IMG/VR virus record: IMGVR_UViG_3300042502_001233 | Span: 124,001-188,000 of that record | Reading direction: 5' to 3' (one strand) | Length of the DNA stretch: 64,000 nt | Part shown: piece by piece, positions 24,525-63,457 of the stretch | Layout of the letters: every line of letters begins with the position of its first letter | Position numbering within the stretch: position 1 is the stretch's first letter | The notes under the pieces: generated by a model | What the model saw: only the letters and a program-made list of their open reading frames with translations | Databases searched by the model: none | Told to the model about the DNA's origin: nothing | Program-made: the position numbers and the translations under genes

Positions 24525-26333
24525 ATGAAAAAAATAAATAAATTTTTAGAAAAATGTAATAATGTACATGGTAATGTATATGATTATTCTTTAGTTAATT
24601 ATATTAATAATAAAACTAAAGTTAAAATAATTTGTTCGATTCATGGTGAATTTGAACAGACACCAGACAAGCATATAAACTCAAAACAAGGATGTCCAAA
24701 ATGTTCGTCAAACTATAAATTAACAAATGAAAATTTTATAACTATATCAAATAAAATCCACAAGAATACTTATAATTATACCAACACAGTTTACTTAAAT
24801 GCAAATTCTGATGTTGATATAATTTGTGAACATCATGGTCTTTTTAAACAAAGACCTAGTGCACATATGTCAGGTCAAGGGTGTCCAAAATGTGCTGGTA
24901 AAAATAAAACCAACAGTGAGGTAGTTAATGAATTTGTTACTGTTCATAAAGATAAATACGATTATTCTTTAGTTAATTATGTTAACCAAAAAACACCATT
25001 AAAAATACTATGTAAAGAACATGGTATTTTTGAACAAACCTATAACACACATAAAAACGGTCACGGGTGTCCAAAATGTGTTGGTAGGAATAAAACAAAC
25101 GAACAATTTATTAAACAAGCAAAAAAAATACACAATAATAAATACAATTATTCGTTGGTTGATTATAATAAATCCAACGATAAAATAAAAATTATATGTC
25201 CAATTCATGGTGAATTTGAACAAAATTCAAACAACCACTTAAATGGAAATGGTTGTCCAAAATGTAAGGGGTTATCAATAATAGAAAAAAAGACAAAGAC
25301 AACTGAACAGTTTATAAGTGAAGCTAAACTTGTTCATGGTGATAAATATGATTATTCTTTAGTTGAATATAAAAATTGTAAAGATTGTATTAAAATTAAA
25401 TGTGTAGAACATGGTGAGTTTGAACAAACACCAGAAATACATTTATCTGGTTGTGGTTGTCAAAAATGTGGTTTTAAATACAATTATAACGAAATCATGA
25501 TAAGCGATTTTATTAAAAGTTTAAATATAAAGACAATTAATAATTCTAGAAAAATAATATCACCACTAGAATTAGATATATTTATACCATCACATAATGT
25601 AGCAATTGAATACAACGGTTTATATTGGCATAGTGAAATAAATAAACCATCTAACTATCATTTAAATAAAACTGAAATGTGTGAAAAACAAGGTATTCAG
25701 TTAATCCATATTTTTGAAGATGAATGGTTATACAAACAAGATATTGTAAAATCTAGACTAAAAAATATATTAGGGTTAACACCCAATAAAATATATGCTA
25801 GAAAATGTGTTATAAAAGAAATAGATATTGAAACATCAAAAAAATTTTTAAATGAAAACCATATTCAAGGTAATGTAAATAGTAGTATTAAAATCGGATT
25901 GTTTTATAATAATGTGTTAGTCAGTTTAATGACATTTGGTAAGGGTAGGATAGCCCTAGGTGGTAATTCAAATCAATTTGAATTGCTTAGATTTTGTAAT
26001 AAATTAGAATCTATCGTTATTGGTGGTGCAGATAAATTACTTAAATATTTTATAAAAACCTATAACCCAAAAGAAATAATTAGTTATGCTGATAGAAGAT
26101 GGAGTCAAGGTGGTTTATACGATAAATTAAACTTTATTAAAACTCATAACTCACAACCAAATTATTGGTATATTAACAATAATCGAAGAGAATATAGATT
26201 TGGTTATAGAAAATCAATACTAGTTAAAAAAGGTTTTAACCCAAATAAAACCGAACACCAAATTATGTTAGATAGAAAAATATACCGAATTTATGATTGC
26301 GGTAATATAGCATACAAAAAAACCCTCTATTAA
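24525..26333 (+). CDS. Free-standing endonuclease 2, paralogue of 19681..21111
   Basis: 602 aa; five Zn-ribbon repeats; the same IISPLELDIFIPSHN and IHIFEDEWL nuclease region and GNAT-like tail. Confidence 0.75.
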   Translation: MKKINKFLEKCNNVHGNVYDYSLVNYINNKTKVKIICSIHGEFEQTPDKHINSKQGCPKCSSNYKLTNENFITISNKIHKNTYNYTNTVYLNANSDVDIICEHHGLFKQRPSAHMSGQGCPKCAGKNKTNSEVVNEFVTVHKDKYDYSLVNYVNQKTPLKILCKEHGIFEQTYNTHKNGHGCPKCVGRNKTNEQFIKQAKKIHNNKYNYSLVDYNKSNDKIKIICPIHGEFEQNSNNHLNGNGCPKCKGLSIIEKKTKTTEQFISEAKLVHGDKYDYSLVEYKNCKDCIKIKCVEHGEFEQTPEIHLSGCGCQKCGFKYNYNEIMISDFIKSLNIKTINNSRKIISPLELDIFIPSHNVAIEYNGLYWHSEINKPSNYHLNKTEMCEKQGIQLIHIFEDEWLYKQDIVKSRLKNILGLTPNKIYARKCVIKEIDIETSKKFLNENHIQGNVNSSIKIGLFYNNVLVSLMTFGKGRIALGGNSNQFELLRFCNKLESIVIGGADKLLKYFIKTYNPKEIISYADRRWSQGGLYDKLNFIKTHNSQPNYWYINNNRREYRFGYRKSILVKKGFNPNKTEHQIMLDRKIYRIYDCGNIAYKKTLY

Positions 26334-26361: not shown

Positions 26362-29202
26362 TTATATATTATCAAAAGAAGCACCAGTATTCATGATAAC
26401 AAACTCAAGTTGAATAAACTCTAAAGCTCTAGTTGGCTTCAAGAAAATTTGACCTGTAAGTTGATTTCTGTCGATATCTTCTGGGTCGTTTGAAAGAACC
26501 ACTCTAAAGTCTGTAAGACCTCTTTCACTTCTAATGTTATCTAAGATTGGGTTAACCAACGCTAAGAATTGATTTCTAACCACGTTATCATTTTGTTCAA
26601 ACAACAATCTGATAGAAACAGCAGAGATAAGTTTTCTTGCTTGTAACAACAATCTTCTTACGTTAATTCTGTCAAGAGCAGACTCTTTAACTTGCATTGT
26701 TTTATTACCCCAGATTTTAATACCATCTGTTGTAAACGTAGCGATTGGGTTGATTCTAGCTTCGTACAACGTATCTCTTTCAGCAAGAGTAAGTTTTTTA
26801 CGAGCTTGGATTGCATCAACATCACCTCTGTTAATACCAGCAACCGCGAACCAAGGGAAAGCAATGTTGTCAGTAAGAGCGATGTTTCTAACTACATCTC
26901 TTGTTGGCGGCATCCAAATGTAAACGTTGTTTTCTGTATCGTTTACTTGAATCCATGGCCAATAAGTACAAGAGTAGTTACTATCATACATACCATCTAA
27001 ACGGTCAGAAACTTCTTCAGCGCTTATTACATCACCAGATAAATCAGTATCTGGTGTTGTCATAATGTACAACGAGTCAGCTCTATCTTGTTCAACCATA
27101 TCGATTGTAGCTTCAATTAAGTTGCTGTTGTAATCGTTGTCGATACCTGGGGTTGCGAATACGTTAATATTAACAGCTTCTGGGTTTCTAAATGTCCAAA
27201 TAGCTTCTAGGTAAGCATAGTAATCAGAGTTGATACCAATATCACCGTTAGTAAGAGTTCTATATTTGAATATTTCACTTTGTAAACCAGCTTGTCCGTT
27301 AGTACCATTTACGACGAAACTATCTAAATTACTTCTTCTAGTTCTGTAAATATCCCAACCATCAAAACCACCGTAAGGTACAAATGTAAATTTACGTGCA
27401 AATATTTTTTCATAGTCAGTTCCTAACACACCAGCTTCAGTTCTAAACTCAGCATTACCAGTATCAAATAGGAATACTGGAGAATATGTGTCACCACTTG
27501 AGTTAATAACAATTTTAACATTGTCAATTGTAGCACCAGTAGCGTCAATATCCATGTGGAAACCATGTGTCATACCAGTCCACATATTTGAATCACCAAC
27601 TGTTGGAATACCTTTATAGTCAAAGAAATCAGAATCAATACCTAAAGTCTCAGAAAGACCTAAGAAAACTTTACGTTTATTTTCAAAAGCGCTATACGCT
27701 CTTTTATACGTTAACGTTGGGTCAACAACTGATTGTCCGTTTGAATCGTAATCTCTAATAGGGAAACCAATAAAACCAGCTGGGAAAGTTGTGCTAGTAT
27801 CACTAGTGTCATCCATTTCAATAAGAACGTAAGATGATTTTGAAGGGTATTCACCATTATAAGTACCAATTCTTCTAGCTATATAGTTGTTAGATGTTGG
27901 GTCAAGAGTACAACGACTAAAGCTTTCCAAGATTGTTGGTTGAGCGTCAGTATCGAAATAACTTCTTATAATAACATCAAACTCTTTAGTGTCTAATTTA
28001 ATATTTCTAATAGATATTTTGAATTGTTCGTTAGCAGCGTTACCATCAGAAATAGTCCAAAATCTGAATAATCTCAATACTTTAGTACCACGTAATTCTG
28101 ATACAACATATGGAGTTACAGCTGGGCTGTATTCTTGTAAGTAATCATCAAAACTTCTGTCATAATCAACAAGAGCTTGTTTTAAACCTCTGATTTTACC
28201 AGCTGCTCTGTCATCTTTAAACATTTCTCTATAGAATTCTTCAACAAACAAAGCTGTATTACCATCATCGTTAGTTCTACCTAATACTCTAGGTAAATAA
28301 TTTTGTTTTGTATTATCCATAGATAGTTGGTAACTAAACGCACCTTGTGTTGTTGATGTACCAGTCAATACAAAATCACCAACAGGGTTTGTAGTAGAAG
28401 TTGTAATACTTGTACTGAAATTTACGTTAGTTGAAGCTGTTATTTCAAATGCTGGAGATTGTAAAGTTGGGTCAACAGAACCTCTAGAACGTAACAACGC
28501 AACCAATTTATCTTCAATACCGCTATAAACAGTACCTGAATAAGTTACTGTAACACCAGTTGTAGAACCTGTTACAAAACCACCTGAAGTACCTACTGAA
28601 GTTACTTTTAAATCAAAAGAAATACCGTTAAAATTAGCACCCACTTTTTCATAATAAGGACCAACACTAACAACATCATTTACAGATGAAGTAGCCAAGA
28701 ATGCTAATTCAGAAGTCAATGTACCATCATTGATAAGTGTTTGAATCAAAGGAACTGAAGAAACAACTGTTACGTTAGTACCACCAGTTGTTGCTGTAAA
28801 TGTTATGAAATTTGAAGTTACTGAAGTTCCAGTGTTTGTTGTTACAACCGAAGCTGGGTCCAAAGCAGCATCCAAAGTGATACCCCATGCAAAACCAGCA
28901 TCATATCCAGAAAACCCTAATACTCTAGTTACGAATAATTGGTTTGATTGTGTTAAATATGATTTAGCGATGTATGGTAATTCATATTTAGGTGCCCCTG
29001 TGTCTTTAACTCTAGTCGCATTTTGCCCACCAAAGAAAGATTGGAACTCGCCATAGTTACCAACAAATATAGGTTGGAATGCTGGACCAATTGTAGTCTC
29101 ACCAACTAAACCTAATGTTGTTACACCTATCTGACGTGTGATAAAAGATAAGTCTTTTTCTGAAGTATATACACCAGGACTTACGAATACTTTTGTTGCC
29201 AT
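26362..29202 (-). CDS. Tail sheath protein
   Basis: 946 aa; VFVSPGVYTSEKD, GLVGETTIGPAF, YWPWI, PWFAVAG..RG, WGNKT, LDRINVRRLL, KPTRALEFI. Confidence 0.92.
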   Translation of the reverse strand: MATKVFVSPGVYTSEKDLSFITRQIGVTTLGLVGETTIGPAFQPIFVGNYGEFQSFFGGQNATRVKDTGAPKYELPYIAKSYLTQSNQLFVTRVLGFSGYDAGFAWGITLDAALDPASVVTTNTGTSVTSNFITFTATTGGTNVTVVSSVPLIQTLINDGTLTSELAFLATSSVNDVVSVGPYYEKVGANFNGISFDLKVTSVGTSGGFVTGSTTGVTVTYSGTVYSGIEDKLVALLRSRGSVDPTLQSPAFEITASTNVNFSTSITTSTTNPVGDFVLTGTSTTQGAFSYQLSMDNTKQNYLPRVLGRTNDDGNTALFVEEFYREMFKDDRAAGKIRGLKQALVDYDRSFDDYLQEYSPAVTPYVVSELRGTKVLRLFRFWTISDGNAANEQFKISIRNIKLDTKEFDVIIRSYFDTDAQPTILESFSRCTLDPTSNNYIARRIGTYNGEYPSKSSYVLIEMDDTSDTSTTFPAGFIGFPIRDYDSNGQSVVDPTLTYKRAYSAFENKRKVFLGLSETLGIDSDFFDYKGIPTVGDSNMWTGMTHGFHMDIDATGATIDNVKIVINSSGDTYSPVFLFDTGNAEFRTEAGVLGTDYEKIFARKFTFVPYGGFDGWDIYRTRRSNLDSFVVNGTNGQAGLQSEIFKYRTLTNGDIGINSDYYAYLEAIWTFRNPEAVNINVFATPGIDNDYNSNLIEATIDMVEQDRADSLYIMTTPDTDLSGDVISAEEVSDRLDGMYDSNYSCTYWPWIQVNDTENNVYIWMPPTRDVVRNIALTDNIAFPWFAVAGINRGDVDAIQARKKLTLAERDTLYEARINPIATFTTDGIKIWGNKTMQVKESALDRINVRRLLLQARKLISAVSIRLLFEQNDNVVRNQFLALVNPILDNIRSERGLTDFRVVLSNDPEDIDRNQLTGQIFLKPTRALEFIQLEFVIMNTGASFDNI

Positions 29203-39597: not shown

Positions 39598-40640
39598 TAA
39601 GGTATTCTAATTAATCTAATATTATTATCAAGACAAAATTTTGTCTTGATAGAATCGTTATGTTTTATTTTTAAAAAACCTAGTTCACCGCCAAATTTGT
39701 TTATAGGTTTATAATGTTGGATTCCGTCGTATTCAATACATATATTATGGTTTGGTAAATAAAAATCAAACGGTAGTACTTGAATGTTTTTGCAATTTAC
39801 AAACGTGTGTTGTTGCTTAAATAAAATATTATTTTCAACTAGATATTCCCTAATCTTTTTTTCACCTTTTGATTCTTTACAAATAGGGCAACCATTGCCC
39901 CTCAAGTGCATATTAGGGGTCTGGTTAAACATACCATGAACAGGGCAAATTATTTTAACTTTAGTTTTTGATTTTAAATAATCAACCATAGAGTAGTCAT
40001 ATTTATTACCATGTATTTTTTTAGCTTCTAAAATAAAATCATTATTAGTCTTATCCCTACCAACACATTTTGGACATCCTTGTTTTAATTTAATGTGAGC
40101 ACTTGGTAATTGTTCAAACACACCATGAACAGGGCAAATTATTTTCATTTTAGTTTTAACGTTTTTAAACTGTATTGATGAATAATCATATTTATCACCA
40201 TGTGTTTTTTTAGCTTCTAAAAGAATATCTTTAGTTGTTTTAAACAACCCATTACACTTACCACATGTTTGACCTTTTAAATGATTATCTGGTGTTTGTT
40301 CAAACATACCATGAATAGGGCAAATTATTTTAACTTTAGTTTTAGCATTTTTATAATTAACTAAAGAATAATCATATTTATTATTGTGTATTAAAATAGC
40401 CTCATTAATAAATATATTATCCTTTTTCCTAGTATTTTCACTAATTTTATCATAACCACATTTATTACAACCTTGTCCCCTAGAAATATGGTGATGTGGC
40501 GTTTGTTCAAACATACCGTGAATAGGGCAAATTATTTTTACTTTGGTCCTAACATCTTTATAATCAACTAATGAATAATCATACTTATTTTCATGTATTT
40601 TTTTAGCTTTTTCGATAAATTTTAAATTTTTATTTTCCAT
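39552..40640 (-). CDS. Free-standing endonuclease 3 (Zn-ribbon repeats + PD-(D/E)XK/DUF559-like nuclease)
   Basis: Four CPxHG...H...C..C repeats; LPFDFYLP...IEYDGIQH; RLIRIPY; late motif upstream. Confidence 0.75.
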   Translation of the reverse strand: MENKNLKFIEKAKKIHENKYDYSLVDYKDVRTKVKIICPIHGMFEQTPHHHISRGQGCNKCGYDKISENTRKKDNIFINEAILIHNNKYDYSLVNYKNAKTKVKIICPIHGMFEQTPDNHLKGQTCGKCNGLFKTTKDILLEAKKTHGDKYDYSSIQFKNVKTKMKIICPVHGVFEQLPSAHIKLKQGCPKCVGRDKTNNDFILEAKKIHGNKYDYSMVDYLKSKTKVKIICPVHGMFNQTPNMHLRGNGCPICKESKGEKKIREYLVENNILFKQQHTFVNCKNIQVLPFDFYLPNHNICIEYDGIQHYKPINKFGGELGFLKIKHNDSIKTKFCLDNNIRLIRIPYYEVISESLNIFLTK

Positions 40641-49643: not shown

Positions 49644-49703
49644 TTTGTTTTTATTTTATTATAAATATTATATTTAAAGTTAAAAAATGGTTTAATCTAA
49701 TAA

Positions 49704-51574: not shown

Positions 51575-54013
51575 TTATTGTGCTGTTGAAACTGTTACAG
51601 CACTAAACGTTAAACCAGATGTTATTACATTATAAACCAATCTCTTATCTTGTGTATCATTATAAACTGATTTATCGTTAAAACTTTGATTAAAATCATA
51701 GATATAACCAAAATCAGTTTTAGACGGTAACCTGTCTGAGAATGTTTTTAAATTATAAGACACACCATATGTATCACCACTGTTTTTAACCCTAGTTAAA
51801 AACATACTACCAGACATACTAGATACACCCATTAACCTATGTATAATTAAACTACTGTTTATCATTAAACCATTTAATAATACACTATCTAATCTGTTTG
51901 CACCAAATACCGAATTAACGATTATTGAGTCATCAGAAACTGTATAATCAAATTGTTCATTAACACCTGGCCCACTATACCCTAAACCAAACGAACAGTT
52001 TCTTAAGATACCGTTGTTTTTAATATTTCCGTTGGCTAACAAGTTAAGTTGGTACATTTGATTCCTATTATCTAACCCAACACCGTCAAGAGCCACAACA
52101 TTATCAATTGAAGCTGTGTTAGTTATTATAAATAAGCTCATAAATGTTGAATTAGTGATACTACCATTAACCGAACTAATATTTAAATTGAATGTATCAC
52201 CATATCTTTGTGAGTATGGTAAAAATACTGAATTATAAAGATTGTTTACAACAAAACCATCAACATTTGTATCTGGTTCGTAATCGACAATAGGGAATAT
52301 GTTGAAATCTTTTATTAATGATGTACCACTAAATCCAGATAAAGGTAACGTTACATCAACAGAATACGGTGTTTCATTTAGGGCAATTGGTAAACGAACA
52401 CCATTCCCTAACGATGGTACTGTACCTGTGGTTACACCAGATATAAATGGGTCTGCTACTGTTTTTGCGAAATCTATGTATAAATTATCGTAATACGGTT
52501 CATACATAACATATCTATGGTTTGTAGTTATAGTAGGGTTATTATTAGTACAATAATTTACCGTTCCTCTATTATAAATCGTAGAGGCTGTTGTAGCACT
52601 TGTCCCACCAGATAACTTATTGTATAAATAATTAAACCAATTTGTGTTATCCATTTGAAATCTTCTGTATCTCTGCACTCTCCAATCCACATTTGCAGAA
52701 ATAGACCCGTCAGCGTTTTCTCTTTTTATGATAAGACCTTTTCTAGTACCAATTAAATTAGCTGGTATGTTGTCATCATAAATGTCTGTATCTGTAAAAT
52801 CGTATTCTAATTTATCACCAGCAAAAGTTAAACTTTCTGCAAATATTGAGAAACTAGAATTATCCAGAGCGGTTAACACCAATGATTCTACAATTGGTGA
52901 AGGGTTTTCAGCACCAGTCATAGACATATATGGTCCATCATCATGTACTTCAGTGTTTAACACACCACCAGATTTAAAGACTGGTTTTCCATTTATATCA
53001 TTTATGGTAGAACCAGACGGTACATTAGAATATCTTTGTTTTTCAAATTTCATCTTAACACCAATATTATTAGCGCCAGTTATTGATGGAGAAAAACGGA
53101 TATAAGCTGAGTTAAAATAATCAATAATGGTAAATGTAGAACCAGTTGTTACAGATGCACCTGAAGGTGCAAAAACACATACCACCGTATCACCGTTAGC
53201 CGCAATGTTGCTAGGTACATTATTGAATTGGCTATAAAGACCTGAAGAACCTATAATTTCATGTTCTTGAATTCTATTTCTAGAATCAGAACCATTTATT
53301 TGGTAAACTGTTTGATAGTCGGTTAATATGTATTTATTACCTGGAACTAATTGATTGTTTGTTACCAGCGTATTTAATGTTGCGTAATCACCACTAAAAC
53401 GACCCTCAGGCGCTTGCCATTCAGCCATACCCTCAGCATCAACACATGTTAATACACTACCTATTTGTGGTTCATTTGTAACTATAAGCCTTTCGGTTCT
53501 AGTAATCCCAGAAACATCAACCCAAATTGTTCTACCAGTGTAACCTAAACTAGTAGCTGAATAAGTTGTCAAATCCAAAGTTTCAACAGTACCACTATAA
53601 TTACCACCACCTAAATCATAGAAAGCTATAGGTGTTATATCAAAAGTAACACCAGTATAAAACAATGCAACGGTGTTTCCGTCAATAACAGTGGTTGTTT
53701 CAGCCGAAAAAACTGGTTCTTCAATAAGTTGAGTGGTTGCGGATAAAGATGGTGTTATCGCTGAAAGATAAGGTTCACCAATTACCATAATAGGGTCATA
53801 CCAATTATAAATAGTCGTCGTACCGTTACCTGAAAATGTACTAGCTAGCATTGTGTATGTTTCTGTATCTCCGCTAGTTTCCAAATTTGGACCACTAGTC
53901 AATGCACTGAATGTTAATCCAAATGAAGTACCACCAGATAAAACTGTGTGAGTTTTCTCAAATTGCTTTATTTGTCTATTGTCTGAATAATCTAATTTTG
54001 TCCTAAAAGCCAT
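51575..54013 (-). CDS. Structural/fibre protein
   Basis: 812 aa; LVPGNKYILTDYQT fibre-like motif; beta-helix-like C-terminus; late motif upstream. Confidence 0.55.
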   Translation of the reverse strand: MAFRTKLDYSDNRQIKQFEKTHTVLSGGTSFGLTFSALTSGPNLETSGDTETYTMLASTFSGNGTTTIYNWYDPIMVIGEPYLSAITPSLSATTQLIEEPVFSAETTTVIDGNTVALFYTGVTFDITPIAFYDLGGGNYSGTVETLDLTTYSATSLGYTGRTIWVDVSGITRTERLIVTNEPQIGSVLTCVDAEGMAEWQAPEGRFSGDYATLNTLVTNNQLVPGNKYILTDYQTVYQINGSDSRNRIQEHEIIGSSGLYSQFNNVPSNIAANGDTVVCVFAPSGASVTTGSTFTIIDYFNSAYIRFSPSITGANNIGVKMKFEKQRYSNVPSGSTINDINGKPVFKSGGVLNTEVHDDGPYMSMTGAENPSPIVESLVLTALDNSSFSIFAESLTFAGDKLEYDFTDTDIYDDNIPANLIGTRKGLIIKRENADGSISANVDWRVQRYRRFQMDNTNWFNYLYNKLSGGTSATTASTIYNRGTVNYCTNNNPTITTNHRYVMYEPYYDNLYIDFAKTVADPFISGVTTGTVPSLGNGVRLPIALNETPYSVDVTLPLSGFSGTSLIKDFNIFPIVDYEPDTNVDGFVVNNLYNSVFLPYSQRYGDTFNLNISSVNGSITNSTFMSLFIITNTASIDNVVALDGVGLDNRNQMYQLNLLANGNIKNNGILRNCSFGLGYSGPGVNEQFDYTVSDDSIIVNSVFGANRLDSVLLNGLMINSSLIIHRLMGVSSMSGSMFLTRVKNSGDTYGVSYNLKTFSDRLPSKTDFGYIYDFNQSFNDKSVYNDTQDKRLVYNVITSGLTFSAVTVSTAQ

Positions 54014-54074
54014 ATTTTATTGTTTTATTATAAATATTCTAGGTTTTGAATATATTTATAATAAAACATAATTT

Positions 54075-54584
54075 ATGAGTAGATTTATATCAAAAGAACG
54101 TTTACAGGAATTAGTTGGTGGAGATATCACTTCAATTGGTGGTGATTTTATCGCAACAAATGATAGTCAAATACAAACAGGACCAGTTAAAAAACCGTAC
54201 AATGATGATTCTGAATACGAAAAAGGTATGTCAACAACAACCGATAAAGTGTTTGGTCGTTATAGACAAGACATACCATGGTTTGCTGTTTATAGCTTTG
54301 GCGGTTCAAACACTGGTGGTCTTGCACTTAACTATGGTTCAATCAGTAAAATAGGTTTTAATGAAAATACTACGGTTATCAAAAAGAAAACTGTTGAAGA
54401 AAAGATAGATGATTTGGTAAAAAGAAGCAAAACTTCAGATGTTACCGATAAAAATTACAACCCAAAAGTTGCTAAATTAATTGACACTATTAGTGATGTT
54501 GATTTAACTGATGCTCAATTAGAAGAATTATCAAAAGCAATATTAGATAAAAAGAACAACATCAAACCAATTAAAAACCTATAA
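54075..54584 (+). CDS. Hypothetical late protein
   Basis: 169 aa; TATTTATA at 54053-54060. Confidence 0.6.
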   Translation: MSRFISKERLQELVGGDITSIGGDFIATNDSQIQTGPVKKPYNDDSEYEKGMSTTTDKVFGRYRQDIPWFAVYSFGGSNTGGLALNYGSISKIGFNENTTVIKKKTVEEKIDDLVKRSKTSDVTDKNYNPKVAKLIDTISDVDLTDAQLEELSKAILDKKNNIKPIKNL

Positions 54585-54585
54585 T

Positions 54586-55014
54586 ATGAATAGTAACATC
54601 AATGATAAACAAATTAAAAGCACCGATGGTCAAGTTAAAAACCATCAAGCTTTTGCTATGGAACTATCTAGGATTGGTGAAGCTAAAAAAATGTGTGAAG
54701 AAACTAAAAATTGTTTTGAATACAACAGACTAGGTGGTCAAAAAAGAAAAATAGAACTTGAATCAATAGTTCAAAGTGAAAGAAAAAGGGATGAAATGAG
54801 AAGAAAAACTCAAATGGATACAAACCCTGAAAACATGCACCAAGATGAAAAAAAACCAACTGACGTTGGTGTTACTAAAGTGACAAAATCAGCGGACCAT
54901 AGCGGTGGTGAAGTTAAAAAAATTCTTTCTAACTCACAAGCATTATCTGAAGAAATTTCTAATATGAAATATTTAATAGAATACATGAATAATAACAAAA
55001 AACAAAAACTATAA
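54586..55014 (+). CDS. Hypothetical late protein
   Basis: 142 aa; C-terminal LSEEISNMKYLI motif. Confidence 0.6.
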   Translation: MNSNINDKQIKSTDGQVKNHQAFAMELSRIGEAKKMCEETKNCFEYNRLGGQKRKIELESIVQSERKRDEMRRKTQMDTNPENMHQDEKKPTDVGVTKVTKSADHSGGEVKKILSNSQALSEEISNMKYLIEYMNNNKKQKL

Positions 55015-55017
55015 AAC

Positions 55018-55476
55018 ATGCCTACAGTTTACAACGGTGGTCAATCACCATTAGAAAATTATGCAATTAACGGTAACCCAATATATCCTGGGACTGGTAG
55101 ATTAGCTATTATACAACAAACTAGAATTGGTACTGGTAAATATAATTTCCAAGGTCCATATAAAAATCCACAAATTACAGGTAACTTAAACGATGTTTAC
55201 GGAGCTACCAATACAAACGCATTGGCTGATAACTTATCACCATACAACGGTAGAGGTACTGGTGACGGTGTAACTAACGGTGTATATGCAGCAATTACTA
55301 ACTATGCTGGTGGTAACATCGAAGACATAAACGGTGTTGCTTCTTATGCGGGTTCTGGTAGAAATCAAGAAGTCACACTTAATGCTGCAACTTGGGGTTA
55401 CGGACCATCAGCTATTGCTGGTAGTAACTATGTAATACCTAACACAGCTAGTAACATTGGTCAAGTAATAATCTAA
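55018..55476 (+). CDS. Gly/Asn-rich small virion protein
   Basis: 152 aa; composition and late-operon context. Confidence 0.5.
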   Translation: MPTVYNGGQSPLENYAINGNPIYPGTGRLAIIQQTRIGTGKYNFQGPYKNPQITGNLNDVYGATNTNALADNLSPYNGRGTGDGVTNGVYAAITNYAGGNIEDINGVASYAGSGRNQEVTLNAATWGYGPSAIAGSNYVIPNTASNIGQVII

Positions 55477-55490
55477 AAAAAAAATATTTT

Positions 55491-55988
55491 ATGAAGCTTT
55501 ACAATATCTTTGAAGAAGTTATATTAGAAGAAATCAAGAAAAATTCTCAGTTAATTTCTGAGGGTGTTTCTTCTGATGCGGTTAAAGCTGTTATCAGGGA
55601 TAAAGTAAATGTAAACATACTTTATCAAGATTATGTTGACCAACCACCTAGTAAACGATATATACAAGTATATAATTACGCATCAACTAAAGTAAACAAC
55701 GACTCAATTAGAGCGTATCAAATTAGTGGTGGTTCAAAAACTAAAAAACCAAATAGTTGGAAAATATTTTTGTTAGATAAAATAGTTGGTTGGTATCCAA
55801 CAAACATGAAATGGCAAAACCCTGTATCTGATTATGACGCTAGTATTCCAGCTTATAATCAGTTAGGTGATAGAACAATGAGTCAAGTTTATGATAAAGT
55901 CAACCCAGATACGTTCACAAGACAAAGAAGTGATATCTATCAAAACCCTAACTTAACACAAGATAACGAAGAAGACGAAGAATTTTAA
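55491..55988 (+). CDS. Stand-alone WYL-like domain protein
   Basis: KRYIQVY...SIRAYQ..G.S...WKIFLLDKI pattern. Confidence 0.5.
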   Translation: MKLYNIFEEVILEEIKKNSQLISEGVSSDAVKAVIRDKVNVNILYQDYVDQPPSKRYIQVYNYASTKVNNDSIRAYQISGGSKTKKPNSWKIFLLDKIVGWYPTNMKWQNPVSDYDASIPAYNQLGDRTMSQVYDKVNPDTFTRQRSDIYQNPNLTQDNEEDEEF

Positions 55989-55992
55989 AATT

Positions 55993-56604
55993 ATGGATGT
56001 ACCAAAACCAGTAGACATAGGTGCTTTAAGTGCTTTATTAGGTAAAGCAAAACAAGTAATGAATGTGGTAGAATCTAGAGCTCCAGAAAAAAAACAAGAA
56101 AGAGGTCGAGATTTCGACCCTAGAGACTCATACAATCAATCAATGTTTGATAACGCTCCAATATATAACGAATCTGACGAAAGAGAACCTATTTATGAAA
56201 ATTATCAACAATCAGCACCACAAGGTATTGTTCAAAACCATGACTACACACCAGAACAAATTATGGCGTCAAATTTACCTCCAATAGTAAAAGAAGCGAT
56301 GTTAAAAAACCCAATCCCTAGATTGAGTGGACCACCTTCAAAAGTTAGCGCTGAAGAGATTGCTAGAATAACTGGAGCTAAAATTAGAACACCACAAAAA
56401 CAACAAAGACAAGTTATTTCTGAAGGTATAGTGAGTGATGATATGATAACAATTAGCAAAACTCAATTACAAGATATGATTAATGAATCAATTAACACTT
56501 TTTTTAAACAAACGTACAATAAAACTGTTACAGAAGAAACAATAAAAAAGACAATTAATCTACTAATAAAAGAAGGTAAAATACAAACTAAAAGAAAAAT
56601 ATAA
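55993..56604 (+). CDS. Hypothetical protein
   Basis: 203 aa; LPPIVKEAMLKNPIP; ISE/INE motifs. Confidence 0.6.
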   Translation: MDVPKPVDIGALSALLGKAKQVMNVVESRAPEKKQERGRDFDPRDSYNQSMFDNAPIYNESDEREPIYENYQQSAPQGIVQNHDYTPEQIMASNLPPIVKEAMLKNPIPRLSGPPSKVSAEEIARITGAKIRTPQKQQRQVISEGIVSDDMITISKTQLQDMINESINTFFKQTYNKTVTEETIKKTINLLIKEGKIQTKRKI

Positions 56605-56633
56605 AAAAAAGGGGTTTAATAACCCCTTTTTTA
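56604..56633. terminator. Intrinsic terminator
   Basis: AAAAAAGGGGTT-taat-AACCCCTTTTTT. Confidence 0.75.
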
Positions 56634-56696
56634 TTTACTATTTGTTTTTAAAACGATATATTTAAAAATCAATAAAATGTTTTAAAACAAATTTTC

Positions 56697-56753
56697 ATGA
56701 AAAAATTAAAAGTATTGGTAGTGCCTTCAGACCGTACAGGTGTAAGCTACTTT
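56697..56753 (+). pseudogene. Orphan 5' end of the glycosyltransferase (MKKLKVLVVPSDRTGVSYF)
   Basis: Hand translation; the frame runs on into the cassette and stops at 56819. Confidence 0.85.
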
Positions 56754-56796
56754 GACTTTTTTTATGTTTTTCTATATATTTATAATAAAATAACTT

Positions 56797-57693
56797 ATGG
56801 AAAAAGAAACAGAAAATAAAATTATTAACCTTTATTTAAGTGGGGTAGGTTCGACAACAATAATAAAGTTAATCCCAAACATAACAAAAAAAAATGTTTT
56901 GAAATTATTAAAAGAAAAAAACATATTAAGAAATCGATTATTAGGTGACGAATTTTATAAAGATTATTGGTTTGATGGTGAATATTGGTGTGGGTTATGG
57001 GTTTGTGAATCATGTAATAATAAAATTAATTTTTCAGTTAAAGAAAAAAGTTTATTAAATAGAAATTTAAAAAGAAAAAAAATATGTAAAAAATGTTCAC
57101 TAGAAAATCAAATAGGTGAAAATAACCCATTTTTTAATAAAAAACATTCAATTGAATCAATAATTAAAATATCAAAAAGTAAAATTGGTATAACAACTAG
57201 CGACCATATGAGTAAATCTGAATATAGAAAAATGTTTAGTGACATGGCTAAAGAACGTTGGGGTAATGGTAGTATGGAAGAAACAAGAATTAAATTAAGT
57301 AATCTAATGAAAGAAAGAATTTCATCAGGTTTATTAAAAAGTTATAATAGGTCTAAAGCAGAAGATGAATTAATATTAACATTAGAAACTAAAAATATTT
57401 TAGTCGAACCAAATTATCTATTAGAAGGTAAAATATTTGATTTATATATACCTAAATTTAATTTATTAATTGAATATAATGGAGATTATTGGCATTGTAA
57501 CCCACAAAAATACGAATCTAATTATTTAAACACTAAAAAAAATAAAACAGCTAAAGAAATTTGGGAGTATGATGCTAAAAAACTTTACTTAGCCAAAAAA
57601 AATCACTATAATTGTGAAGTAATTTGGGAAACAGATTACAAAAAAAATAAAAACATAATATTAAACATATTAAAAAAATATGAAACAAACTAA
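56797..57693 (+). CDS. Free-standing endonuclease 4 (HTH + Zn finger + NUMOD3 + Vsr/DUF559-like nuclease)
   Basis: CESC...CKKC; GENNPFFNKKHS; RSKAE...FDLYIP...IEYNGDYWH; VIWE. Confidence 0.8.
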   Translation: MEKETENKIINLYLSGVGSTTIIKLIPNITKKNVLKLLKEKNILRNRLLGDEFYKDYWFDGEYWCGLWVCESCNNKINFSVKEKSLLNRNLKRKKICKKCSLENQIGENNPFFNKKHSIESIIKISKSKIGITTSDHMSKSEYRKMFSDMAKERWGNGSMEETRIKLSNLMKERISSGLLKSYNRSKAEDELILTLETKNILVEPNYLLEGKIFDLYIPKFNLLIEYNGDYWHCNPQKYESNYLNTKKNKTAKEIWEYDAKKLYLAKKNHYNCEVIWETDYKKNKNIILNILKKYETN

Positions 57694-60077
57694 TTTAAAC
57701 ATCACCCCAGTTAGTCGAAAAATCAAGGTATTAGTAGTACCTAGCGACAGGACTGGGGTGAGCTGAAAGCTACTTCCGTTCAACAAACCCACACATCGCA
57801 TTAGAAAACAATTACCCAGATGAGTTTTCAGTAGATATTGATTATGAACCACAATTAAATAACGATGAGTGGTTAAAACAATATGATATCATTCATTACC
57901 ATAGAACACTTGGTAGTTACGAACAAATGCCACAATTATTACAACATCTAGATAATTTAGGTATAATCACCATTATGGATTTAGATGACCATTGGGCTCC
58001 AGGCCCACACCACCCAGCATATCACATTATTAAATCTTCTGGGTTAGATAAAAAGATATTAGACAACATTAAGTGCGCTAGAAACGTAACAACAACAACA
58101 CGTTTATTTGCAGAAGAAATAGCTAAACACAATAAAAATGTTTTTGTTCTTCCAAACGCAGTTGAACCAACTGAGAAACAATTTACTCCAAACTTAGAAA
58201 AATCTGATAGAATTAGAATTGGATGGTTAGGTGGTTCGTGTATGACACCAGATACTGAAATTCTAACCGATGAAGGTTGGAAACGATTTGATGAATTGGA
58301 CCAAACAGAATTGGTTGCAACGTTAAACCCAAAAACAAATCAAATGGAATATCATAAACCAGTTGGGTATATATGTGAACCGTTTGATGGTGAATTGAAT
58401 TGTGCTAAAAATGGTTTAATTGAATATGAAGTTACACCAAACCATAATATGTATGCTTCTGTTGCTAAATCATTGACACATAAAAAATTAAATCTAGAAT
58501 TAATTCAATCTGAAAAAATACATGGTAAAAATTTTCATGTTAAAAAAGATGCTATTTGGATGGGTGAAGAAAAAGAGTTCTTTATTTTACCAATGTTAAA
58601 CGAATATCATGAAATTGAGGAAAATGAAAATTTTATTGATAGGTTAATATCTAAAAAACGCTATAATGGGTTATCTGGAAAATATAGTTCAGATAAATTT
58701 ATAGATATGGATAAGTGGTTAGAATTTTTCGGTTTTTGGTTAGCTGAAGGTTGGACTAGTAAAACAAAAGGATTACATCAAGTTGGTATTGCTCAATCAA
58801 AAGATAATAATTATTTATCACATATGTATGATTTATTAATTGAAATTGGGTTCAAACCAACATATACTAAAGATAAAAAACAAATTAGAGTTTTTGATAA
58901 ACAACTATGGGAATATTTATCAAATTTTGGAGATGCTTACGATAAATTTGTACCAAAAGAAGTTTTAGAGTTATCTAGAAGACAATTAACTATTTTTTTA
59001 GAATGGTTTATTAAAGGTGATGGTCATATTGAAAAAAATAAATATAATAGAACTAGAGCGTTTACATGCTCACCTTCATTAGCTAATAATTTACAAGAAA
59101 TTGCATTAAAAATAGGTATATCAGCAACTATAACAAATAGGGGTAAACGAACATCAGAAATTAAAGGTAGAGCTATTAATAATCAATATGATTCGTTAGT
59201 TGTTAATTTTACTAAACACCCTAGCGTTAGTAAACATAATAAAAACACGCCATTAGTTAAAAGTGAAGACCAATATAATAGATACTATAAAGGTAACGTG
59301 TATTGTGTTGAAGTTAAAAACCATATCATTTATGTAAGGAGAAATGGTAAAGCGATGTGGATTGGTAACTCACACTTGAAAGATTTGGAGATTCTTAATG
59401 GCGTTGTCACTAAATTAAGAACTGATGGATTGATTGACAAAGTTCAATTTGTTTTGTGTGGTTTTGATACAAGAGGTACACACACAGAAATTGACCAAGC
59501 AACTGGTGAGCAAAAAGTAAGACAAATTACACCTATGGAAAGTGTTTGGTTTAGATATGAAAAAATATTTACAGACAACTATCAAATCGTTAGTCCAGAG
59601 TATAAATCTCATCTTATGAAATTTACGTTGGATGAATTCCCAAATGTTGCTAACGAACCGTATCGCAGAGTTTGGACAAAACCAATATCAACCTACGCGT
59701 CAAACTATAATTTATTTGACATCTCTTTGGCACCGTTAGAAGAAAATATATTTAACAAAGTTAAAAGTCAGTTAAAAGTTATCGAAGCTGGTTTCCACCA
59801 TAAAGCTATCATTGCTCAAGACTTTGGACCATATAAAATTGATTTAAAGAACGCGATTCAATATGGTGGTGGTTTTGATGAAACAGCTAACGGTATCCTT
59901 ATTGATTCTAAAAAGAATCACAAAGATTGGTATACTTCGTTGAAAAAATTAATAACAAACCCTAATATGATTCCAATCCTTCAAGAAAATCTTTATAACA
60001 CTGTTAAAGACACATATTCAATGAACAAAGTAACTGAGGATAGAAAAGAATTATATTTAAAATTAACACAAAAATAA
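57680..60077 (+). CDS. GT-B (GT4-like) glycosyltransferase with intein; 5' part interrupted by a 7-nt out-of-frame insert with TGA at 57764
   Basis: KVLVVPSDRTGVS*|SYFRSTNPH...DLDDHW...NVTTTT...VLPNA...RIGWLGGS|SHLKDL...DISLAPL...FNKVKSQLKVIEAG; frame open from 57762. Confidence 0.75.
57702..57761 (+). other. GC-rich stem-loop within the recoded gene start
   Basis: TCACCCCAGT/ACTGGGGTGA outer stem; GTCG/CGAC and AGGTA/TACCT inner stems. Confidence 0.7.
58239..59369 (+). mobile_element. LAGLIDADG intein in the glycosyltransferase (377 aa)
   Basis: Starts CMTPDTEILTDEGWK, ends WIGN, +1 residue Ser; FFGFWLAEG and WFIKGDG motifs. Confidence 0.9.
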
Positions 60078-61804: not shown

Positions 61805-63457
61805 ATGATTACAATAGGTTATTGTACTAGAATTAGTAACCCAAATTTTGGTAAACATTTAATAAAAACGTGTGGTTTAGGTAATAAAAAAGTTGAAATT
61901 ATTGAAATAGTTAATACTGGTAATAGGTCATTAACTGAATGTTATAATGAAATTTTAAATAAGGCGAAATATAATTATGTAGTGTTTACACATTCTGATT
62001 TAACTATTGACACAAAACAATGGGGTAATAAATTGGTTAAACTATTCGAAAAAAATCCTGAATATGGTATCATCGGTGTTGCTGGTAGCAAAAACATGCC
62101 AGAGTCTGGTCAATGGTGGGAAAATAGAAGTAAAATGTATGGTCGCGTTCAACACACGCACGAAGGCAAAACTTGGTTATCAAGTTATTCTGAGGACTTA
62201 GGTCAAGAACTTGAAGAAATTGTTGTTTGTGATGGTGTTTGGTTTTCTGTTGATAAAAGAAGATTGAAAAAAGAATTTAACGAAGAAGTTGAAGGGTTTC
62301 ATTTTTATGATGTAACCTTTGCTTTTGAAAATTACCTACAAGGTGTTAAAGTTGGTGTAACAACTGCTATTAGAATCAATCACCAATCTATCGGTATGAC
62401 CAACGAAGCGTGGGAAAAAAACAGAGCCGATTTCGCTGAAGCTTTTCAAGCATTCTTACCAGCAAACGTAAAGAAAACACTTCGAAAAGGGCAAAAACTT
62501 AAAGTACTTATTGGTTGTTTAAGTTTTTCAAATTATACTGGTTCTGAGTTATATGTTTTTGAATTGGCAAAACAATTAATCAAACAAGGTTGTGAGGTTT
62601 CTGTGTGTTCTAGTATCGGAGAACCTTTGTTATCTGCGGCAAATAAACTAGGGGTTAAAATGTATAGTATACAAGAACCACCTGGGTTTAAGTTAGGTGA
62701 TGGTAAATGGATGTTAAAATCACCACAAGGTGATGTAGTCTCACAACCAAACACATTGTACAAAGTACAAGATGTTAATTTTGATGTGATTCACTTAAAC
62801 CACAAACCAGTTACGGAACATTTATTGAGATTCTATCCAGAAACACCAGTAATTTGTTCTATACATTCAGAAGTAATATCTTTGGAGGAGCCAGTTATTT
62901 CACCTCAAATAAAACAATACATCGCCATTAGACCAGAGATTAAAAAACACATTGTGGATACTTTTGGTGTTGATAAAGATTTGGTTAGTGTTATTTATAA
63001 CCCAATTGATGCTGATAAATTTAAAGTAGTTAACACAACTGAAAAACGAAATAAAAAAAGAATACTTTTTGTTGGTACCATTGATTATCTTAGAAGAAAC
63101 ACAATTCAAGATTTGATAAATGTTACTCGAGAAAACAACCAAGAACTTTGGATTCTTGGGAAGAAAAACGATACGTATTTAGATGAGATAATAACCAACG
63201 AACCACATGTAACATATCATGAACCTACATCTAATGTTGAAAAATTCATTCACCAATGTGATGAAACCGCTGGGATACTTTTAGGTAGAACAACTATTGA
63301 AGGTTGGATGTGTGGAAAATCTGGTTGGATTTACAATGTTGATTCTACTGGGGTTATATTGTCAAAAGCATTACATGAAGTACCTACAGACGTCGATAAA
63401 TTCAACAGCAAAAACATAACAACCCAAATAATTGAAGAATATAAAAAAATATTATAA
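61805..63457 (+). CDS. Two-domain glycosyltransferase (GT2-like + GT4-like)
   Basis: YVVFTHSD, GIIGVAG, FHFYDVTF in the N-terminal part; TGSELYV..L, YNPID, GRTTIEG in the C-terminal part. Confidence 0.75.
   Translation: MITIGYCTRISNPNFGKHLIKTCGLGNKKVEIIEIVNTGNRSLTECYNEILNKAKYNYVVFTHSDLTIDTKQWGNKLVKLFEKNPEYGIIGVAGSKNMPESGQWWENRSKMYGRVQHTHEGKTWLSSYSEDLGQELEEIVVCDGVWFSVDKRRLKKEFNEEVEGFHFYDVTFAFENYLQGVKVGVTTAIRINHQSIGMTNEAWEKNRADFAEAFQAFLPANVKKTLRKGQKLKVLIGCLSFSNYTGSELYVFELAKQLIKQGCEVSVCSSIGEPLLSAANKLGVKMYSIQEPPGFKLGDGKWMLKSPQGDVVSQPNTLYKVQDVNFDVIHLNHKPVTEHLLRFYPETPVICSIHSEVISLEEPVISPQIKQYIAIRPEIKKHIVDTFGVDKDLVSVIYNPIDADKFKVVNTTEKRNKKRILFVGTIDYLRRNTIQDLINVTRENNQELWILGKKNDTYLDEIITNEPHVTYHEPTSNVEKFIHQCDETAGILLGRTTIEGWMCGKSGWIYNVDSTGVILSKALHEVPTDVDKFNSKNITTQIIEEYKKIL

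Follow-up and report, generated by a model that had tools for sequence, protein, structure and literature searches.

How a giant phage produces a glycosyltransferase whose reading frame is broken near its 5' end by a stop codon and a few additional bases is the question raised by this locus. In the window, the whole 64,000-nt stretch of DNA that was analysed (positions 124,001 to 188,000 of IMG/VR record IMGVR_UViG_3300042502_001233), a 28-codon ORF (ORF1) ends in the sequence ACT GGG GTG AGC TGA A AGC TAC TTC CGT, and the remainder of the glycosyltransferase (ORF2) lies in a different frame that remains open for 769 codons but has no ATG, GTG, or TTG before position 57927. A preliminary description proposed that ribosomes hop from the first AGC to the second, by analogy with T4 gene 60, restoring the native GVS-YFR junction. 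The arrangement was confirmed base for base, and every comparative test that could be run agrees with this interpretation, although the hop itself remains an inference without protein, RNA, or read data.

Anatomy of the interrupted gene

The features of the locus are collected in Table 1. A phage with 93-98% identity in the flanks, designated L001, holds the empty site, reading GTA AGC TAC TTC straight through and lacking a 1015-nt insert (L001 668-4008 matches window 53412-56752, and L001 3994-4467 matches window 57761-58234). The insert is a cassette comprised of a homing endonuclease gene (HEG), a replacement N-terminus (ORF1), a hairpin, and the stop codon with its gap, an association with an HEG that the preliminary description did not mention. 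The displaced native start is identical to the start of the uninterrupted gene in L001.

Table 1. Features of the interrupted glycosyltransferase locus, in window coordinates.
Position	Strand	Feature	Details
56605..56632	+	Intrinsic-terminator-like hairpin	12-pair stem followed by a T run; ends the upstream gene (55993-56604)
56697..56752	+	Remnant of the native glycosyltransferase start	MKKLKVLVVPSDRTGVSYF; cut off by the insert, the frame running on into a 40-codon ORF ending at 56819
56753..57767	+	Inserted cassette	1015 nt relative to L001; boundaries ambiguous by the 9-nt repeat AAGCTACTT
56776..56790	+	Phage promoter-like motif	ATATTTATAATAAAA; 6 nt upstream of the endonuclease start, inside the cassette
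56797..57693	+	Homing endonuclease gene	298 aa; stop overlaps the ORF1 start by 14 nt
57680..57766	+	ORF1	28 codons plus TGA (MKQTNLNITPVSRKIKVLVVPSDRTGVS*); 11-codon extension, then a synonymous copy of the native N-terminus (KVLVVPSDRTGVS)
57702..57761	+	Three-tier RNA hairpin	60 nt; 3' arm (ACUGGGGUGA) ends on the first base of the take-off codon
57761..57763	+	Take-off codon	AGC (Ser)
57764..57767	+	Coding gap	TGA plus one A
57768..57770	+	Landing codon	AGC; decoding would resume at TAC 57771
57768..60077	+	ORF2	Rest of the predicted GT-B (GT4-like) glycosyltransferase, 769 codons including the intein
58239..59369	+	Intein	377 aa (Cys...Asn-Ser) with a LAGLIDADG endonuclease domain; lacking in L001

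The endonuclease has a helix-turn-helix-like N-terminus, an I-TevI-like zinc finger plus NUMOD3 DNA-binding motifs, and a C-terminal nuclease core (FD...NLLIEYNGDYWHCNP) that weakly resembles PD-(D/E)XK / Vsr-like REase_MTES_1575. The promoter-like motif preceding it occurs in 20 copies in the window (up to 2 mismatches) against 4.8 expected, 4 of which are exact. The interrupted enzyme is predicted to adopt a GT-B fold: an AlphaFold model of the uninterrupted L001 protein, built from a 25-sequence alignment, has a pLDDT of 87 (a single-sequence model was unusable at pLDDT 38), and its top Foldseek hits are MshA, GlgM, BshA, PglA, and PimA, with E from 1e-14 to 1e-10. The protein also matches phrog_7162 glycosyltransferase, though the Pfam GT4 match is below threshold. 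Extra residues at the junction, or loss of the N-terminus, would be costly.

The hairpin folds at about -30 kcal/mol (-29.9 to -30.4 depending on the stretch folded), with z of -4.2 to -5.8, and no shuffle out of 200 folds as well. Its 3' arm includes the GGGGUG that was initially described as SD-like, but none of 42 long ORFs in the window has an SD-like 4-mer upstream, and a Shine-Dalgarno role for this stretch is thus unlikely. No tRNA genes were found in the window, giving no sign there of a phage-encoded hop-specific tRNA.

Searches for close relatives among cultured phages identified no cultured host system. Megablast of 16 kb of the window and a tblastn of the 811-aa neighbouring protein found nothing, a tblastn of the HEG found only a distant nuclease domain in Klebsiella phages, and at the DNA level only an 80-nt HEG motif matches the Campylobacter phage 'Hef' genes.

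Recurrence and selection across related alleles

The same architecture occurs in 45 distinct alleles from 76 independent public contigs, which argues against an assembly artefact, although reads for this particular contig could not be mapped. Part of this set was retrieved with a pattern that fixed the outer stem of the hairpin, whereas the HEG-anchored set was not constrained in this way. Relatives of the HEG sit just upstream of this glycosyltransferase family in 74 of 80 loci, and cassette alleles are scattered among native ones on the host-gene tree, where parsimony needs 10 changes and well-supported branches force at least 4. HEG divergence tracks glycosyltransferase divergence, which indicates long co-inheritance, and the hop state fills a deep HEG clade.

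A stop codon immediately follows the take-off codon in 45 of 45 alleles (TGA in 31, TAA in 13, and TAG in 1). TGA is a rare stop in the window, ending 3 of 42 long ORFs. The rest of the gap varies in length and sequence, with hop distances of 5 nt (3 alleles), 6 nt (18), 7 nt (10), 8 nt (8), 9, 10, 11, 12 (2 alleles), and 13 nt, such that all three frame classes are represented. Natural variants of the junction include GGT TAA GGC, AGT TG AGC, and GGT TAACCAACA GGT. Close relatives also differ, as allele L223 has a hop distance of 12 nt and allele L229 one of 11 nt with an identical ORF1, while L170 uses TGAC where L178 uses TGACG. Only a frame-independent hop restores GV[S/G]-[YFHK][FY]R in all of them.

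The take-off codon is RGY in 45 of 45 alleles, while the same codon in 43 uninterrupted alleles is RGY in only 18. Take-off and landing codons covary (AGC/AGC, GGC/GGT, GGT/GGC, and so on), and the landing codon can form at least 2 Watson-Crick pairs with the anticodon of the take-off tRNA in 45 of 45 alleles. The preliminary description had identical codons at the two sites of the window, but this identity is not universal: at codon positions 1-3, all three pairs are Watson-Crick in 11 alleles, the third is a G:U wobble in 18, the first is a G:U wobble in 10 that pair AGY with GGC, and the third is mismatched in 6. TCN serine codons never occur at the landing site, but 9 of 26 native alleles have them there. 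GGC, conversely, is frequent as a landing codon, yet it is absent there in native alleles and rare in the window (39 GGC against 1126 GGT). AGA, an Arg codon never seen at this position in native proteins, serves as the landing codon in 2 alleles, which fits a codon that is not decoded. Part of the landing-codon signal is trivial for Gly alleles, because every Gly codon is GGN, and the comparative statistics as a whole are not corrected for shared ancestry.

ORF1 is 26-29 codons long in all 45 alleles, and its copied part has a dN/dS of about 0.24, while that of the extension, whose conserved TPV is dictated by the hairpin arm, is about 1. ORF2 is full length in 40 of 41 complete alleles, with dN/dS of 0.05-0.28 at dS of about 1-2 between cassette alleles, and the 52 codons directly after the landing codon have a median dN/dS of 0.15. 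An internal control is provided by the displaced native start, which is decayed in L170, L171, and L193 or deleted while ORF1 stays intact. The junction also persists where the HEG is lost, for example in L026, L054, L062, L173, and L032. The hairpin folds at -25 to -38 kcal/mol in 40 unique alleles, against -4 to -12 in 17 uninterrupted HEG-adjacent alleles and z of about 0 in native starts. Counts of MFE pairs anchored on the take-off codon show compensatory changes at many pairs, including the pair that holds the first base of the take-off codon (U-A with AGY, and C-G or U-G with GGY).

These data contradict the possibility that the glycosyltransferase is simply inactivated in cassette-bearing phages or that the 7 nt are an assembly error. 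The gene is a hot spot for selfish elements, and one allele, L192, has a premature stop in ORF2, but the conservation of ORF1, the hairpin, and ORF2, together with recurrence in contigs from many samples, makes this reading very improbable.

Proposed translation across the stop codon and gap

The explanation that best accounts for these observations, and one that we consider likely, is a programmed translational hop, though direct experimental evidence to support it is lacking. In the proposed mechanism, ribosomes initiate at the replacement start, translate 28 codons, and reach the take-off AGC in the P site with the rarely used stop UGA in the A site. Instead of terminating, peptidyl-tRNA-Ser (anticodon GCU) lets go of AGC, and the mRNA slides forward by 7 nt, giving ...TGVS-YFR..., the native sequence. 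The hairpin is the probable driver, as its 3' arm lies inside the ribosome at take-off, so that closing of its 10-11 bp outer stem behind the ribosome would pull about the right length of mRNA through. Refolding upstream hairpins have been found to push ribosomes in the 3' direction (PMC3639245; PMC6321510; 10.1101/2024.12.09.627546). The stop and gap probably also break the recognition site of the endonuclease, protecting genomes that carry the cassette, an immunity role inferred only from the position of the gap inside the conserved target and from the T4 mobA/gene 60 precedent.

Alternatively, the gap may be decoded rather than skipped, with each allele using whichever conventional recoding fits its gap length: a +1 frameshift at AGC-UGA for gaps of length 1 mod 3 (giving GVS-E-S-YFR in the window), a +2/-1 shift for 2 mod 3, and stop-codon readthrough for in-frame gaps, with the upstream hairpin and the stop as general stimulators. 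A stop codon in the A site together with an upstream duplex is the classic +1 stimulator, as in prfB, and upstream refolding hairpins stimulate +1 shifting (PMC6321510). In every allele the required frame through the gap is free of stops, so no single allele excludes frameshifting, and 21 of the 45 alleles have in-frame hops (6, 9, or 12 nt) that readthrough could also serve. However, this model needs three different mechanisms in one homologous element, with switches between very close relatives, re-pairing of tRNA-Ser(GCU) on GCU in the +1 frame is poor, and the avoidance of TCN, preference for the rare GGC, and use of the non-native AGA as landing codons are left unexplained. We regard it as unlikely. 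A +1 slip on the GGGG run was rejected since it runs straight into a UGA, and reassignment of TGA as a sense codon was rejected since it does not fix the frame for 7-nt or 8-nt gaps and TAA and TAG alleles exist.

A second alternative is that two polypeptides are made, ORF2 being translated by reinitiation or from an internal start, with the 28-residue peptide supplying strand beta-1 in trans or being dispensable. Genes split by HEGs whose halves reassemble are known, as in T4 gp39/gp60 and Aeh1 NrdA (10.1101/2022.08.31.505936), and an in-frame ATG exists at 57927. Yet no ATG, GTG, or TTG lies between the gap and codon +53 in the window, no conserved start codon lies before codon +53/+69 across alleles, and the 52 codons before the ATG of the window are nevertheless under strong purifying selection. 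The genes of the window use no SD that could recruit ribosomes, and this model, which we consider highly unlikely, gives no reason for the constraints on take-off and landing codons.

Removal of the gap from the RNA, by endonuclease cleavage and ligation or by an unknown tiny intron with the hairpin as recognition element, is likewise doubtful in the extreme, though it cannot be excluded without RNA-seq. The hairpin is conserved at the RNA level with covariation, and phage genes interrupted by HEGs are often repaired by RNA splicing. Nonetheless, an Rfam search of 56000-58600 at E up to 10 found no intron or ribozyme, only sub-threshold sRNA noise, and no combination of junctions within the 9-nt repeat gives the U / omega-G boundaries of a group I intron. 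Only 44 and 74 non-coding nt flank the HEG, the upstream 'exon' is decayed or absent in most alleles, no known mechanism excises 5-13 nt, and the obligatory stop codon and tRNA-compatible landing codon would have no role.

Comparison with known bypassing and mobile elements

Programmed bypassing has essentially one well-studied bacterial or phage example, T4 gene 60 and its homologs, all in one gene, and the gene 60 cassette has been called unique (10.1101/2022.08.31.505936). In the T4 gene 60 / mobA cassette (Bonocora et al. 2011; Manning & Atkins, 10.1101/2022.08.31.505936), as here, an HEG travels with a new N-terminal coding piece and a non-coding insert that begins with a stop codon straight after a take-off codon and ends at a matching landing codon, with an upstream stem-loop. 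Both are found in many related phages by repeated insertion, both inserts persist after endonuclease loss, and the likely role of both is to protect against the element's own nuclease. The present cassette is analogous but not homologous to it. Its target is a GT4-like glycosyltransferase rather than the topoisomerase II large subunit, in which all MobA elements lie (10.1101/2022.08.31.505936), its endonuclease is not the MobA of the gene 60 cassettes, and its gap is 2-10 nt instead of 50 nt. There is no room for a take-off stem-loop in the A site, at most a 4-bp AGCU/AGCU pairing that follows automatically from the matched codons, nor for an SD-like landing aid or a forward slippage barrier. 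The hairpin abuts and includes the take-off codon, the first 17 codons of the host gene are replaced rather than the gene being split into two proteins, and the take-off tRNAs are Ser(GCU) and Gly(GCC), not Gly reading GGA.

The cassette also resembles synthetic 'stop-hops' over 9 nt in E. coli (Weiss et al. 1987, as reviewed in PMC5009743), in which matched codons flank a stop codon and 9 nt specify one amino acid. Eighteen alleles (for example GGT TAA GGC and GGC TGA GGT) have exactly this form, and the window is a 7-nt variant. The synthetic hops were low-efficiency events in artificial constructs, and shorter-distance counterparts of bypassing were long expected although no natural stop-hop is known (PMC5009743), whereas the hop inferred here would be natural, conserved, attached to a dedicated hairpin, and needed for an enzyme under selection. 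This raises the intriguing and, in our view, probable possibility of a widespread natural family of programmed short-range hops, powered mainly by a hairpin refolding behind the ribosome, which a mobile cassette uses to break its own target site inside a needed gene without killing that gene. This would signify a second independent invention of an endonuclease-plus-bypass cassette and the first natural counterpart of the synthetic stop-hop. It would offer a minimal system (hairpin, stop codon, matched codon) for testing how an exiting-mRNA structure drives forward ribosome movement, with the 45 natural variants in gap length, codon pair, and stem sequence as a ready-made mutational series, and it warns annotators that such genes will be called as truncated or broken.

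Mitochondrial 'byp' elements of Magnusiomyces capitatus are likewise short mobile inserts in coding genes that are skipped by ribosomes, with a slow-to-decode codon after the take-off codon, but these are 27-55 nt GC-cluster-like elements in a yeast mitochondrion that use an unassigned sense codon rather than a stop and are not linked to an endonuclease gene. The prfB (RF2) type +1 frameshift shares UGA in the A site after the shift codon and a G-rich duplex-forming element just upstream, though prfB has a fixed +1 geometry, a slippery CUU U site, and SD:anti-SD pairing, while here the distance varies, AGC U is not slippery, and the G-rich stretch pairs within the mRNA. Finally, as with the free-standing homing endonucleases of T4-like phages (seg/mob genes) and HEG-bearing group I introns or inteins, a selfish nuclease gene sits next to or inside a conserved phage gene, with an empty-site allele in a near-identical phage and a patchy distribution over the host-gene tree. 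Neither RNA splicing nor protein splicing appears to repair the gene at this junction, while the separate LAGLIDADG intein further downstream illustrates how many selfish elements (an HEG cassette and up to two inteins) can pile into one phage gene.

The interrupted gene and its empty site

The sequence around the proposed take-off site was found to be exactly as given in the preliminary description, reading ACT GGG GTG AGC TGA A AGC TAC TTC CGT, with a short upstream ORF (ORF1) ending at the TGA and the frame of the glycosyltransferase (ORF2) resuming at the second AGC (Table). About 1 kb upstream of ORF1, a second start encodes a further copy of the N-terminus and then runs into unrelated sequence. 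The ORF lying between the two copies contains NUMOD3 and I-TevI-like zinc-finger motifs together with a conserved C-terminal core that weakly resembles PD-(D/E)XK/Vsr-like nucleases, and is interpreted here as a homing endonuclease gene (HEG). Its stop codon overlaps the ORF1 start by 14 nt. The HEG carries its own copy of a motif, ATATTTATAATAAAA, located 6 nt before its start, that recurs just upstream of gene starts through the window (20 matches with up to 2 mismatches against 4.8 expected, including those at 49654, 54023, and 54052) and is probably a phage promoter.

Features of the window discussed in the text
Position	Strand	Feature	Description
19681-21111	+	Zinc-finger protein	Treble-clef zinc finger (DUF4379); REase_MTES_1575-like nuclease domain
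24525-26333	+	Zinc-finger protein	Treble-clef zinc finger (DUF4379); REase_MTES_1575-like nuclease domain
26362-29202		Tail sheath	
39645-40055	-	Zinc-finger protein	Treble-clef zinc finger (DUF4379)
56697		Second (native) start	Encodes MKKLKVLVVPSDRTGVSYF
56753-57767		Insertion relative to L001	1015 nt, bounded by the 9-nt repeat AAGCTACTT
56776-56790		Promoter-like motif	Copy inside the cassette
56797-57693		Putative homing endonuclease	298 aa
57680-57766		ORF1	28 codons, MKQTNLNITPVSRKIKVLVVPSDRTGVS, ending at TGA
57702-57761		Hairpin	Three-tier, about -30 kcal/mol, z-score -4.2 to -5.8; last pair includes the A of the first AGC
57752-57779		Junction	Take-off codon, stop, gap, and landing codon
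57761-57771		Possible mini-hairpin	4 bp, AGCU GAA AGCU
57768-60077		ORF2	769 codons; no ATG, GTG, or TTG before 57927
58239-59369		Intein	377 aa, Cys...Asn|Ser, LAGLIDADG domain
61805-63457	+	Second glycosyltransferase	GT2-like plus GT4 domains

The window derives from a 362-kb uncultured phage contig of about 30% GC that encodes a tail-sheath protein and several glycosyltransferases, one of which lies 1.7 kb downstream of the interrupted gene, such that the latter sits in a glycosylation cluster next to tail genes. The three further proteins of the window that share the treble-clef zinc finger may be additional homing endonucleases or DNA-modification genes; of the two that also match the nuclease domain, one is fused to a Mom-like domain and the other carries DUF723/CapR. 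A relative, designated L001 (L numbers denote individual loci throughout), is 93-98% identical in the flanks and carries the same gene uninterrupted, with the equivalent of the second start running straight into GTA AGC TAC TTC CGT. L001 lacks both the 1015-nt segment and the intein, and the interruption is therefore an insertion into a gene that is otherwise intact. Other alleles of the enzyme are about 800 aa in length (L010, L018, and L023), and one is 1153 aa and possibly contains two inteins (L024). The uninterrupted L001 protein, modelled with a 25-sequence alignment (pLDDT 87), has a GT-B fold whose best structural matches are the GT4 enzymes MshA, GlgM, BshA, PglA, and PimA. In this model, residues 4-9 form strand β-1, PSDRTG is the following loop, and helix 1 starts at residue 16.

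Recurrence of the junction and its codon constraints

The same architecture was found elsewhere by three independent routes, namely through relatives of the N-terminal part of the enzyme, through a DNA pattern for the hairpin arms searched in viral and metagenome contigs, and through relatives of the HEG, whereas no cultured phage was found to carry the cassette. Parsing of these loci yielded 45 distinct alleles in 76 contigs. In every allele, ORF1 consists of 26-29 codons ending ...SD..GV[S/G], a stop codon follows immediately (TGA in 31, TAA in 13, and TAG in 1), and the enzyme frame resumes after a short gap at [Y/F/H/K][F/Y]R. The distance from the take-off codon to the codon before the resumption point is 5 nt (3 alleles), 6 nt (18), 7 nt (10), 8 nt (8), 9 nt, 10 nt, 11 nt, 12 nt (2), or 13 nt, so that all three frame classes are represented. 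Close relatives differ in this respect: L223 (GGT TAACCAACA GGT) and L229 (GGT TAAATCAA GGT) have identical ORF1 peptides and HEGs only a few percent apart, and L170 (TGAC) and L178 (TGACG) lie in one clade. Although in-frame alleles could use stop-codon readthrough, and frameshifting cannot be excluded for any single allele, no single frameshift or readthrough can serve all of these alleles, while a frame-independent hop restores the native junction in each.

The take-off codon is AGC, AGT, GGC, or GGT in all 45 alleles, codons that are read by tRNAs with anticodons GCU or GCC. In 43 uninterrupted alleles, by contrast, the same codon is RGY in only 18, the remainder being TCN, GGA, or GGG. 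The landing codon can always form at least two Watson-Crick pairs with the take-off tRNA, with 11 perfect matches, 18 matches with a third-base wobble, 10 with a first-base G:U (AGY to GGC), and 6 with a third-base mismatch. TCN never occurs at the landing site. GGC is common at the landing site, although uninterrupted alleles never use it there and it is rare in the window (39 GGC against 1126 GGT), as is AGC (75 against 423 AGT). Two alleles land on AGA, an Arg codon that no native protein has at this position, which fits a codon that is re-paired but not decoded. In the first set, the contrast with native alleles gives a Fisher p of 2e-5, though this value is not corrected for ancestry and the counts are not phylogenetically independent. 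The take-off and landing codons of the window could also be joined in a mini-hairpin, but this follows automatically from matched AGC codons each followed by U and was not counted as evidence.

Selection on the coding frames and the upstream hairpin

ORF2 is full length in 40 of the 41 alleles whose end is on the contig, the exception being L192 (PVMS01062531.1), which has a premature stop at codon 101 and is either a real pseudogene or a sequencing error. Between cassette alleles, dN/dS is 0.05-0.28 at dS of about 1-2. The 52 codons directly after the landing codon, which lie upstream of any conserved start, have a median dN/dS of 0.15 at dS 1.2; ribosomes must therefore enter that stretch in that frame, and the only open route is from ORF1. 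HEG divergence parallels enzyme divergence, and on the HEG tree the interrupted state fills a deep clade with two nested uninterrupted clades and an uninterrupted outgroup. The arrangement is old and not a recent accident. In L240, L243, L245, L248, L250, and about 28 more loci, HEG relatives (31-39% identity over their full length; about 50% in partial matches) sit directly upstream of an uninterrupted glycosyltransferase start, with no extension, hairpin, or stop. The nesting of two such clades within the interrupted clade suggests either loss of the hop or recombination onto native alleles.

The displaced native start provides a built-in control. It is intact only in recent insertions (the window, L174, L186, and L189), visibly decayed in L170 (about 160-200), L171 (about 5150-5190), and L193, and gone elsewhere, while ORF1 is always intact. 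The decayed copies, which lie upstream of the HEG (for example VPTDNTGVCYL, and FTDKTDVSY followed by a stop), show what neutral decay looks like in this region. The junction also persists where the HEG has been lost (L026, L054, L062, L173, L187, and L188), and L032 keeps only a 24-residue HEG remnant.

All 40 unique 78-nt segments ending at the take-off codon fold at -25 to -38 kcal/mol (median -31.5), whereas the corresponding segments of 17 uninterrupted HEG-adjacent alleles fold at -4 to -12 and native starts have z-scores near zero. On a 19-sequence alignment, 98% of cells pair and 4 pairs show compensatory changes; for four of the five measures no shuffle of 500 reaches the observed value (8 of 500 do for further pair types), and none of the slid registers reaches it either. 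In the HEG-anchored set, which was not selected on stem sequence, the arms differ widely (for example CAACGCCC/GGGCGUUG and CCAACUCCAG/CUGGAGUUGG) while the shape is kept. Counts anchored on the take-off codon show 3-6 pair types at positions -10, -9, -7, -4, -1, and 0, and the first base of the take-off codon is paired in 30 of 40 alleles, as U-A with AGY and as C-G or U-G with GGY. Some amino-acid changes in ORF1 are compensatory for the RNA, as in L008, where V to L and P to A swap a G-C pair to C-G.

Proposed hopping mechanism and relation to the gene 60 cassette

The mechanism by which ribosomes may cross the gap is inferred here from sequence comparison alone. With the take-off codon in the P site and a stop in the A site, the 3' arm of the outer stem is still inside the ribosome. 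The stop is usually UGA, which ends only 3 of the 42 ORFs of at least 120 aa in the window (TAA 37, TAG 2). Closing of the 10-11 bp outer stem would draw roughly 6-10 nt of mRNA out of the exit side, which is the observed hop range, and the next RGN triplet would then offer the retained peptidyl-tRNA a place to re-pair. The individual steps are supported by published work on stop-hops in synthetic constructs (PMC5009743), on a 5' stem-loop and exiting-mRNA pairing that drive forward movement in gene 60 (10.1101/2022.08.31.505936; 10.1101/2024.12.09.627546), and on refolding upstream hairpins that push ribosomes in the 3' direction in 70S systems (PMC3639245; PMC6321510). The element proposed to be SD-like in the preliminary description is better explained as the hairpin arm, because none of the 42 ORFs has an SD-like 4-mer upstream. 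Together with the stop and codon usage of the window, this suggests a host that does not use Shine-Dalgarno initiation, such as Bacteroidota, although the host is unknown.

The patchy distribution of the cassette over the enzyme tree and the empty site in L001 indicate homing. The stop and gap interrupt the most conserved stretch of the target, which mirrors the 50-nt insert of gene 60 that protects against MobA (10.1101/2022.08.31.505936), and a similar protective role is inferred for the cassette. Full-text searches found no description of this element, and the literature holds that the gene 60 cassette "remains unique" and that no natural stop-hop is known. The element appears to work like the mobA/gene 60 cassette but is not a member of that family: the host gene and the endonuclease differ, the gap is 2-10 nt rather than 50 nt, there is no take-off stem-loop, and the hairpin abuts the take-off codon.
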